Positions 24,815 to 27,542 of a stretch of DNA of 64,000 nucleotides are shown in pieces. Both the position numbers and the translations under genes were made by a program. The stretch comes from Octopus sinensis (Eukaryota). Location of the stretch: NCBI RefSeq assembly GCF_006345805.1, contig NC_043018.1, positions 10,354,001 through 10,418,000 of the forward strand, read 5' to 3'. A model generated the notes under the pieces. That model was not told where the DNA came from and did not search any database. It was given only the letters and a program-made list of their open reading frames with translations. Each line of letters begins with the position of its first letter. Positions within the stretch are counted from its first letter, which is position 1.

Positions 24815-25057
24815 TTTGTGCTGGTGTTGTTGGTGCTGGGGCTGTAGTTGTCGGAACAGTTGTCGGAACAGTTGTTGGAACAGTTGTTGGAACAGTTGTT
24901 GGAACAGTAGTTGTTGGTGCTGGGGTTGTTGTTGGTGGTGCTGCCCTTTCGACGCAGTGAAGTACGTTGTTTATGAAACACATTTCTACCAAAAGTTCGT
25001 TGTTGCAGTTTGGTGCAGTTTTGGTGCAAGACATATTTGGCAAGTAACAACTGGGGC
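24815..25057 (-). CDS. Coding exon 3: six-Cys module 2 plus Thr/Pro mucin-like stalk
   Basis: Acceptor ttttttttattccag|GC, donor CAA A|gtaagt; 243 nt, phase 1-1. Translates (C)PSCYLPNMSCTKTAPNCNNELLVEMCFINNVLHCVERAAPPTTTPAPTTT(VPTT)5TAPAPTTPAQ and is homologous to exon 2. Confidence 0.9.
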
Positions 25058-25140
25058 CTGGAATAAAAAAAAATAACATCATCATTAGGGTCATCATTGT
25101 TGCCATCATCATCATCGCCAGCTCCACTAACTTCTACCAC

Positions 25141-25176
<36 letters not shown>

Positions 25177-25456
25177 TAGTAGTAGTAGTAGTAGTAGTAG
25201 CATTAGCAGCAGCAGCAGCAGCAGTAGTAGTATCAGCAGCAGTAGTAGTAGTAGTAGCAGTAGTAGTAGTAGTAGTAGTTGTAGTAGTCTATATAACATA
25301 GCACCAGTGTTGATAAACATTGGTGATGTGGAGAAATGAGACTTGCACGTGCATTCATGGGAAACTGCCAGTCTTCTTTAAAAGATTGTGTCCAGGCCTG
25401 CATCTGCATGTGCAAACGAATGGTCAACCTTGACCAACAGGAACCCTAGATATATA

Positions 25457-26907
25457 CGAGGGAGTACCCCAAAGAAACCGGAATTTTGCTATATTCTTTC
25501 ATTCACTTAGTTTTACATGTTTACACTTTTACCACATTCAAAGAATTCTCCATTTGAAGCCCTGCATTGGTCCAGACACATTTTCCACTGTTCGAAGCAG
25601 TCCAGGATCTCTTGGGAAGTGATGCCTTTTAACACCTCTGTTAGGAAGGGCATCCAGCTGTAGAAACTCTGCCAGATCAGATTGGAGCCTGGTACAGCCA
25701 TCTGGTTCACCAGTCCTCAGTCAAAATCGTCCAACCCATGCTAGCATGGAAAGCGGACGTTAAACGATGATGATGATGATGATGATTTTTTTCTTCACCT
25801 CTTCCACATCTGCAAAGTGTTTTCCTTTAAAGACTTTTTTTCCATTTGGGGGAACAAAAAAAAGTCAGAGGGAGAAAGATTGGGTGAATAGGGAGGGTGG
25901 GTAAGTGGGGGTCATGCCATTTTGGGTCAAGAACTGTCTCACTCTCAAGGTGACATGCACAGGAGCGTTGCCGTAATGAAACCACCACTCTCCACTTTGT
26001 CACCGGTCAGGGCATTTTCGTTCCACCACATCTTACAAATGCTTCACAACTGCTAAGTAAAACGTTTGGTCAACAGTTTGACCAGGAGGAACAAATTCGG
26101 TGTAGACCATTCCGTTTGCATTGATGAGGCAAATCAGTAGCATCTTGATGTTGGACTTCACTTGGCACTCTTTTACAGGAGCGTGATGACATTGGACGCT
26201 TCCATTGACTTGATTGCTGCTTCGTTTCCAGGTCATAACCATAGCACCAGCTTTCATCACCCGTGATGATCTTTGAATAAAAAGATCTGGATCAACTTCC
26301 CACTGTTCTTTCAGTTCATGAAATGCATTCAGCCATGACTGCATTCGATCTTCCATGAGCAAGCAAGGCACAAATATTGTTGCAACTCTTTCCATTCACA
26401 ATTCCTCACACAAAATTCATTGGCAGGAGCACCAGGACACAGCAGTCATATCATCCAGTTCATCAATTATTCAGTGATGGTCCTCCAAGATCAGTTCATG
26501 AATTTTCCTGATGTCTCCATTCATTCACAAGGTCAGCGGTCGCCCTGAATGAGGGTGTTCTTCAAGCGACAAGTGGCCATTCCTAAAGTGTGAAAAACAC
26601 TTGTAAACTTGTTTTGCCCATGGCAGTGCCCTTGTAAGTTGTTTGAGGCATGACAACTGTTTCAGCCACCATTTTTCCCAGCAGCAAACAGAATTTCATG
26701 GAAGCATGCTGCTCCTTTGTTTCGGTCATCGCAAAACTCGATGAACAGGGAAGAAGCACTACAAAACAAAGACACACCACGTGACAGTACAACTTCAAAT
26801 GACACCACCAGAGAGCAGACTGATGCCTGAGGGTCGCATCAAGTAGCTTCTAGTGACAGAAGCCTGAACTACAATGGGCTTTCCTACAGACGTTTCTGGT
26901 TACACGA
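25457..26907 (-). mobile_element. Degenerate mariner element filling most of intron 2
   Basis: TA-CGAGGG TIR at 25457. Transposase remnants: KEQHASMKFC..GK, GDESW-like region, EFVPPGQTVDQTFYL, THPPYSPNLSPSDFFLFP. SINE inserted at ~25643-25785. Confidence 0.85.
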
Positions 26908-27425
26908 TGGGCTTCTTTCAGTTTCCGTTTACCAAATCCACTCACAGGGCTTTGGTCAGCCCAAGGCTACAGTAGAAGACACTTAGGGTATATGTATGTA
27001 TCATCATCATCATCATCATCATCATCATTTAGCGGAGAGCAGACGCTAAATGAGGATGATGATGATGATGATGATGATACATACATATATGTGTGGCACC
27101 TTGGGCAAGTGTCTTCTACTGTAGCCTTGGGCCGATCAAAGCCCTGTGAGTGGATTTGGCAAACGGAAACTGAAAGAAGCCCATCGTGTAACCAGTGTTT
27201 GTCCCTACTCTAATGTTGGTGTGCTTATGTCCACATCACTTAGCAGTTTGGCAAAAAGAGACCGATAGAATAAGTACTAGGCTTACAAAGAATAAGCCCT
27301 GGGGTTGATTTGTTCGACTAAAGGTGGTGCTCCAGCATGGCCGCAGTCAAATGACTGAAACAAGCAAAAGAATAAAAGAATAAAAAATCTGAAGTAAAAC
27401 TAAAAAGCAAGATTGAACTACTTAC

Positions 27426-27542
27426 ACATTTTAGGTTCAATACAGAGGAAGACCCCATTCTGGTAGCAGTAACCCTTCACGTAGGGAGTGCAGTTTGGGG
27501 ACGATTTACTGCAGTCAAACATGCCTGTGTAGCAGTCATTAC
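27426..27542 (-). CDS. Coding exon 2: six-Cys module 1
   Basis: Acceptor ttttcttttcttctcaag|GT, donor ATG T|gtaagt; 117 nt, phase 1-1. Translates (C)NDCYTGMFDCSKSSPNCTPYVKGYCYQNGVFLCIEPKM. Confidence 0.88.

Follow-up and report, generated by a model that had tools for sequence, protein, structure and literature searches.

Do two short cysteine-rich exons on the minus strand of the Octopus sinensis genome belong to a gene, and is the domain that they encode a known one? The exons lie in a 64,000-nucleotide (nt) stretch (NC_043018.1, positions 10,354,001 to 10,418,000), here called the window, to which all coordinates refer. Aligned with chromosome CM016880.1 of O. sinensis assembly GCA_006345805.1 from position 10354001, the window shows 0 mismatches over an overlap of 14494 nt. 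Here we examined their splice boundaries, their relatives in other cephalopods, and the predicted structure of their product. The two exons are very probably part of a real, unannotated four-exon O. sinensis gene, and the module that each of them carries very probably represents a new family of coleoid cephalopods, carried in phase 1-1 exon cassettes.

The module exons and the junction cysteine

The two exons, numbered 2 and 3 in the proposed gene (Table 1), have well-defined boundaries. Exon 2 lies between the acceptor ...ttcttctcaag^GTAATGAC and the donor AAAATGT^gtaagt, where ^ marks the exon boundary. Exon 3 (25057..24815, 243 nt, phase 1-1) lies between the acceptor ...tttattccag^GCCCCAGT and the donor GCACAAA^gtaagt. 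In both exons the first two bases complete a codon and one base is left over at the end. A preliminary description of this locus had placed a duplicated module at 24815-27542, and these limits proved to be exact exon ends. It had also proposed that each exon holds five cysteines (Cys) alone and that the sixth arises from a split codon, T^GT for the first module and T^GC for the second, which the exon boundaries confirm. The T for the second junction is the last base of exon 2; for the first, it is the last base of a candidate signal-peptide exon (43983..43911), which ends ...AGT T^gtaaga.

Module 1 reads (T^GT)C-ND-C-YTGMFD-C-SKSSPN-C-TPYVKGY-C-YQNGVFL-C-IEPKM, with the spacing C-x2-C-x6-C-x6-C-x7-C-x7-C. 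Module 2 reads (T^GC)C-PS-C-YLPNMS-C-TKTAPN-C-NNELLVEM-C-FINNVLH-C-VER, with the spacing C-x2-C-x6-C-x6-C-x8-C-x7-C. The common motif attributed to them, CY-x5-C-x4-PNC-x7/8-C(Y/F)-x-N-x-V-x2-C-(I/V)E, is present to the letter. Beyond module 2, exon 3 continues into a linker, RAAPPTTTPAPTTT(VPTT)5TTAPAPTTPAQ, whose DNA forms a 12-nt tandem repeat at 24846-24913 (period 12, 5.7 copies, 96% matches by Tandem Repeats Finder). The N-glycosylation sequons described for the modules, NCT in module 1 and NMS in module 2, are there as well, but they do not characterize the family: homologues do not keep them at the same positions, and we dropped them as a family trait for that reason.

The likeness of the two modules is well above chance. 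BLASTP aligned them at E 2e-7 with 13/37 identities (about 35%). The local alignment score is 73, compared with 23 +/- 4.7 for full shuffles and 31 +/- 7.5 for shuffles in which every Cys was kept in place, and none of 20000 shuffles of either kind reached it. Since even the Cys-fixed shuffles fall short, the likeness must exceed the Cys frame itself, with PNC, N-x-V and [IV]E also held in common. Six-frame scans of the window by regular expression and hidden Markov model (HMM) found only these two full modules, and the HMM scans added a partial third, at positions 1-55 of the plus strand.

A four-exon gene missing from the annotation

To find the first exon, we scanned for frames with an ATG start and a phase 1 end at T^GT, and one convincing signal-peptide exon emerged. 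It reads MVKNRTLLLLVAVLQFLSLVKC, then QS and a final T, with the donor T^gtaaga and a Kozak-like start (aaccATGg). Among the non-repetitive candidates it has a strong hydrophobic core and a consensus-like donor, and with it the spliced coding sequence is in frame. The layout at its end, ...[ES/DS] followed by Q-x-x-C, is common to the homologues. At the other end of the gene, exon 4 begins at the acceptor tttacag^AG, where A^AG encodes Lys, and continues with ECLSPDVTKNLVGMIVGCLSVTCDKAGWIPLMGPPCSNGANCCLKKL and a stop codon. Its pattern is (A^AG)K-E-C-x16-C-x4-C-x13-C-x5-CC-LKKL.

Spliced together, the four exons give a 579-nt coding sequence, in frame, for 192 amino acids (aa), with canonical splice sites throughout. 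The mature protein has 170 aa, 18 Cys and an isoelectric point (pI) of 7.5. The gene is predicted to encode a secreted protein consisting of a signal peptide, module 1, module 2, a Pro/Thr mucin-like linker, and a C-terminal 6-Cys domain. Neither the 192-aa product nor anything sharing 5-mers with it is present in a collection of 15 billion proteins, RefSeq, GenBank and Logan RNA-seq assemblies included, so the gene is unannotated.

A transcribed homologue in cuttlefish

To find relatives, a profile of the two window modules (contiguous exon translations) was run against 1.84 billion representative proteins. One genuine relative was recovered, an "unnamed protein product" of the cuttlefish Acanthosepion pharaonis (E 1e-7). 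The top match, a bacterial repeat protein, was rejected as spurious, because only a 12-residue stretch repeated 13 times was matched. The spliced two-module sequence had no match in a word-indexed protein search. All database homologues of the module family are named "uncharacterized" or "unnamed."

At the A. pharaonis locus (CAHIKZ030001788.1, 1618-20705), a signal-peptide exon ending CCG T^gtacgt is followed by four module exons of 132, 132, 132 and 201 nt, all phase 1-1 and each starting with GT. The signal exon and three of the module exons end in T, so that a T precedes every module. A linker, a 150-nt C-terminal exon and a short last exon follow, and the spliced model encodes 287 aa. The protein deposited for this locus, CAE1274490.1 (203 aa), is mis-predicted and truncated: its start lies within an intron, and the acceptor g plus GT is read as Gly in place of the true Cys. 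The model given here corrects it.

The cuttlefish gene is also transcribed. A 289-aa open reading frame (ORF; protein P0009, in the same 90% cluster as the A. pharaonis relative) runs uninterrupted on contigs of 934-979 nt from 16 RNA-seq runs. Five of these runs were traced in the literature, all to Sepia esculenta, with whole-larva RNA confirmed for one study. The S. esculenta protein is collinear with the spliced A. pharaonis genomic model, with 31/31 Cys conserved, and dN/dS over the modules of the two species is approximately 0.30, from the small counts of 9 non-synonymous and 7 synonymous changes. Across the four module junctions the S. esculenta mRNA reads CCG-TGT-GAA, AAC-TGT-CTT, ATC-TGT-CCA and GAC-TGT-CAA. 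That a T-ending exon stands before each module, which had been taken to support the exon order in octopus, is borne out here in transcripts (TGT at 4/4 junctions) of the cuttlefish homologue rather than of the octopus gene itself. The mature cuttlefish protein has an odd number of Cys, 31, the extra one lying in the short last exon (EKCAGTKKSS), which is absent from the octopus genes; this Cys could remain a free thiol or form an intermolecular disulfide.

The annotated neighbour LOC115223160

The partial module at the window edge belongs to LOC115223160, an annotated gene on the plus strand. Positions 1-55 encode ...NHALCFTDGTLYCIEPII plus a final G, with the donor G^gtaagt, and the annotated protein XP_029649447.1 (103 aa, of which 78 aa are mature) contains this stretch exactly, by tblastn mapping. 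The RefSeq gene encodes a signal peptide and a single module, spaced C-x2-C-x6-C-x5-C-x5-C-x7-C-IE, followed by a 6-Cys domain on a C-terminal exon of its own. The signal exon has the donor ...GCA T^gtaaga, and the module exon runs from the acceptor cag^GT AAG to the donor G^gt, giving QAAC-KEC in the protein; the annotated protein therefore already holds a junction-made Cys. The C-terminal exon (2956-3072) reads (G^AT)D-V-C-x8-C-x3-C-x11-C-x4-CC-VKVPS plus T, and AA at 4493-4494 completes the stop codon. O. vulgaris and O. bimaculoides each have an orthologue of LOC115223160 that retains all 12 Cys; for the O. vulgaris protein (P0007), no gene is recorded. LOC115223160 and the two-module gene stand tail to tail as a small convergent pair of genes from one family.

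A self-compatible exon cassette

In the two-module gene, LOC115223160 and the cuttlefish gene alike, the module is one exon between phase-1 introns. The seven module exons invariably open with GT or GC, after an exon whose last base is T. A module exon has this final T only where another module comes next; the last module exon has A or G in its place and is spliced to the C-terminal exon in phase 1. The modules number one in LOC115223160, two in the two-module gene and four in cuttlefish, and their exon boundaries are identical, which supports the earlier proposal that the module was duplicated as a phase 1-1 cassette. All members found share the architecture of signal peptide, modules and C-terminal domain, within searches of limited sensitivity.

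Together, the symmetric phase 1-1 module exon and the upstream T make up a self-compatible cassette: when copies are gained in tandem or lost, the frame is maintained and the number of Cys stays even, and the copy numbers of 1, 2 and 4 would follow from this freedom. Because a structural Cys spans the junction, protein folding would place the last base of the upstream exon under selection. Octopus module 2 and cuttlefish module 4, both adjacent to the linker, have the x8 loop and CVER in common and are 42% identical; this hints that the two-module state may predate the octopus-cuttlefish split, with the weak tree signal that 36 residues can hold.

Phase 1-1 mobile modules of the type described by Patthy (EGF, kringle, LDLa) are similar in several respects. 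They too have one domain per exon, phase-1 introns and tandem changes in copy number, and they belong to secreted proteins in which the signal-peptide exon, placed before them, has a phase 1 end too. However, the octopus module belongs to none of these families, and its intron sits inside the codon of the first structural Cys. Its disulfide complement also depends on the last base of the upstream exon, which is T only when a module follows. Phase 1-1 exon duplication is textbook; the novelty lies in a domain family apparently confined to cephalopods, in the unannotated gene, and in the Cys straddling every junction. The locus offers a clean example of copy-number change via phase-1 symmetric exons.

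Is the module a known domain?

The family consensus, of approximately 36 residues, is C-x2-C-x6-C-x5/6-C-x5-8-C-x7-C-[IVM]-E. No Pfam-A family was significant for the seven module copies or for four full-length proteins, and PDB sequences had no match for a six-sequence module profile or for the full cuttlefish protein. We next modelled the module and the C-terminal domain separately with AlphaFold2. The module model, built from a six-row alignment, has a predicted local distance difference test (pLDDT) score of 90, with a helix at residues 3-6 over the CxxC and a hairpin (24-30/33-39) that carries Cys5 and Cys6. Foldseek returned nothing for it at E <= 0.001 in PDB or in the viral library BFVD; the non-significant matches included APETx1 and alpha-defensin 1 (E 8-9, template modelling (TM) score 0.30-0.54). 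The suggestion that this is an undescribed disulfide-rich domain holds within these Pfam, PDB sequence and Foldseek searches. Relatives of the module were found only in octopus and cuttlefish. In these searches, it is very likely that the module is a domain of coleoid cephalopods with no detectable relative among described families.

Two described kinds of domain resemble it in part. The EGF-like domain is alike in size (approximately 36-40 residues), in its six Cys, predicted beta-hairpin and tandem repeats, and in its phase-1 exons. Unlike EGF, all seven module copies have x5-8 between Cys4 and Cys5, none has C-x-C, and an N-terminal CxxC helix is predicted. The only EGF-type family in Pfam to appear was EGF_alliinase (E 0.057; 14.3 bits, cut-off 25), which aligned to 18 residues of a single module, and no EGF domain was listed among the Foldseek matches to PDB at E <= 10 for the module model. 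Peritrophin-A/CBM14 and further chitin-binding modules linked to mucins are alike in their tandem six-Cys modules, Pro/Thr mucin-like linker, secretion and hairpin aromatics. Pfam CBM_14 gave no match at E <= 10 for the modules or the full-length proteins, and the loops of CBM14 are much longer than those of the octopus module. Chitin-binding hairpins carry conserved aromatic residues, as the C-terminal hairpin of the module does.

Could the module instead be a highly diverged member of a described small disulfide-rich fold (EGF-like, hevein/CBM14-like, or defensin-like)? Small Cys-rich domains diverge past sequence recognition, Foldseek is weak at 40 residues, and APETx1 and alpha-defensin 1 do appear among its non-significant matches; the aromatics of the hairpin also fit. 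Against this, no Pfam family was significant, no PDB sequence matched, and Foldseek gave nothing at E <= 0.001 although the PDB holds many EGF, defensin and chitin-binding structures. The module has neither the C-x-C of EGF nor the terminal CC of beta-defensins, its loops are shorter than those of CBM14, and a profile-profile comparison shows the module to be unrelated to the C-terminal domain of its own gene. We therefore consider a diverged known fold improbable and a new family the better account of the module.

The C-terminal 6-Cys domain

Exon 4 and the C-terminal exons of LOC115223160 and the cuttlefish gene are homologous, and the Cys array in the three homologues is C-x8-16-C-x3/4-C-x11-14-C-x4/5-CC. 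The junctions before this exon, all phase 1, are A^AG in the two-module gene, G^AA in cuttlefish and G^AT in LOC115223160. As a possible relative of the module the domain was rejected by the profile-profile comparison mentioned above. Its AlphaFold2 model (pLDDT 83) has three strands, and its best Foldseek match in PDB is helianthamide (4x0n_B; TM 0.56-0.61, root-mean-square deviation 2.6 over 37 columns), at a non-significant E of 4.2. Helianthamide is beta-defensin-like (PMC6835510). No big defensin or beta-defensin entry was listed by Foldseek for this domain, and it had no match to Pfam defensin families or to PDB defensin sequences.

A phase-1 intron 5' of a Cys-rich exon links big defensins and beta-defensins (Gerdol et al., PMC7203481), and the same study reports that Octopus genomes have separate, canonical big defensin genes. 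Exon 4 resembles big defensins and beta-defensin-like proteins such as helianthamide in its six Cys ending in CC, with the second and fourth spacings short, its three predicted antiparallel strands, and its place in an exon of its own after a phase-1 intron. The octopus gene also recalls the two-part architecture of big defensins, with a different N-terminal part. Unlike in defensins, the C-terminal domain has a longer first loop and the proteins are neutral to acidic. In addition, the N-terminal part of the octopus protein is not the hydrophobic domain of big defensins. "Beta-defensin-like" may serve for this exon as a weak lead, not as a classification; if the exon is truly defensin-related, it bears on how beta-defensin-type genes were assembled.

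A bolder reading would take the module as a new fold of coleoids and the family as the cephalopod counterpart of big defensins, in which a trans-defensin (beta-defensin-like) exon, still following its ancestral phase-1 intron, is joined to one to four shuffled modules that replace the hydrophobic N-terminal domain. We think this unlikely. If true, the family would illustrate in nature the exon-shuffling route by which beta-defensin-type genes have been proposed to arise, and would make up a new class of molluscan secreted defence or binding proteins.

Is the two-module gene functional?

The two-module gene might instead be a silent or decaying duplicate, with only LOC115223160 and the cuttlefish gene functional. 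The absence of the 192-aa product and its fragments from the 15-billion-protein collection would fit this, as would introns of 16 kb and 4.6 kb full of microsatellites, a satellite array and transposon remnants. However, the frame is intact over four exons, and 18 Cys, eight splice signals, a TATA box and an AATAAA are all in place. The modules are only about 35% identical yet keep the Cys frame, PNC, N-x-V and [IV]E, which argues for long purifying selection. The annotated paralogue LOC115223160 also lacks a Logan transcript, so absence from that collection is weak evidence. Taken together, we see little likelihood that the gene is silent. Chance open frames in repeat-rich intergenic DNA, with no gene at all, are effectively refuted: the window is full of Cys-rich pseudo-ORFs from (TG/CA)n-type microsatellites, but exons 2 and 3 are not low-complexity, neither shuffle control reached the observed score, and module exons with identical boundaries are transcribed in another cephalopod order.

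Several points weigh against a functional gene with a new, coleoid-restricted domain. For the gene itself, the collection holds neither a transcript nor an annotated protein, and its expression, exon 1 (across the 16-kb intron) and exon 4 are predictions from splice logic and homology. The O. bimaculoides locus, which was reached via the neighbour gene and is clearly syntenic with the window (82-93% nucleotide identity), ends approximately 3 kb before exon 4. The restriction to coleoids comes from one two-sequence profile search and word-indexed searches, and single-module relatives in other molluscs could fall below the search threshold. Because Foldseek is insensitive for domains of 40 residues, a distant known fold may exist. 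With regard to a defence role, the mature proteins, unlike typical defensins, are not cationic, with pI values of 4.45 for LOC115223160 and 6.1 for cuttlefish beside the 7.5 of the two-module gene, and any function proposed below is a guess.

Predicted product and possible roles

The family is predicted to consist of secreted, disulfide-rich modular proteins, and its cuttlefish member is transcribed in S. esculenta larval RNA-seq samples. In the structure that we envisage, the six Cys of each module would form three internal disulfides around the short N-terminal CxxC helix and the C-terminal beta-hairpin. The Pro/Thr linker would be O-glycosylated and act as a spacer, repeated modules could provide multivalent binding, and the C-terminal domain would form another functional unit. 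A possible role, proposed tentatively, is that of an extracellular glycoprotein for binding or host defence, and chitin- or glycan-binding by the aromatic-rich hairpin is speculation. No literature mention was found of the peptide strings of the family or of the identifier LOC115223160, and a keyword search on cephalopod orphan Cys-rich proteins returned nothing relevant. With this module, the catalogue of extracellular modules gains a six-Cys domain that is undescribed and confidently modelled, on a carrier gene that is missing from Octopus annotations. At 36 residues, the module is small enough for synthesis, disulfide mapping and nuclear magnetic resonance.

Features of the window and its repeats

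Table 1. Positions of the two-module gene, the convergent neighbour and a dispersed repeat in the window.
Feature	Position	Strand	Remarks
TATATAA box, putative core promoter	44062..44068	minus	approximately 80 nt upstream of the start codon
Exon 1, start codon and signal peptide (predicted)	43911..43983	minus	phase 1 end, final T
Exon 2, module 1	27426..27542	minus	117 nt, phase 1-1, final T; HMM score 62.9-90 bits
Exon 3, 5' part, module 2	24948..25057	minus	HMM score 70-90 bits
Exon 3, 3' part, Pro/Thr-rich mucin-like linker	24815..24947	minus	final A, phase 1 donor A^gtaagt
Exon 4, second 6-Cys domain	20026..20171	minus	located by homology to the cuttlefish protein
AATAAA polyadenylation signal	20001..20006	minus	approximately 20 nt past the stop codon
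LOC115223160, 3' part of single module exon	1..55	plus	HMM match; cut by the window edge
LOC115223160, C-terminal 6-Cys exon	2956..3072	plus	117 nt, phase 1-1
SINE-like repeat copies	~1311-1516, 3876-4078, 7567-7767, 14057-14227, 15685-15812, 17232-17415, 25639-25786, 29607-29796	both orientations	

All three introns of the two-module gene contain repeats. Intron 1 holds a CA/TA-rich compound microsatellite of approximately 3.5 kb (27640-31100) from which many long pseudo-ORFs rich in Cys, Tyr and His arise on either strand; these might be taken for genuine Cys-rich coding sequence. A degraded mariner/Tc1-like remnant lies in intron 2 (25300-26800); within that range, the minus-strand ORF 26033-26395 has a sub-threshold match to Pfam Transposase_1 (E 1.7e-4, 21.9 bits against a cut-off of 24). 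Intron 3 contains an array of a 184-nt satellite (21269-23750; 13.5 copies, 99% identity) that yields a ladder of identical 52-aa pseudo-ORFs. Trinucleotide microsatellites flank two of the exons, with (GTG)75 at 20303-20525, less than 150 nt from exon 4, and (CAT)12(TAG)37 at 25141-25288, less than 90 nt from exon 3. These may hamper short-read transcript assembly and gene prediction. An interspersed repeat of 130-180 nt that resembles a short interspersed nuclear element (SINE) has at least 8 copies in the window, and it is also multicopy in the syntenic O. bimaculoides locus (82-96% identity).

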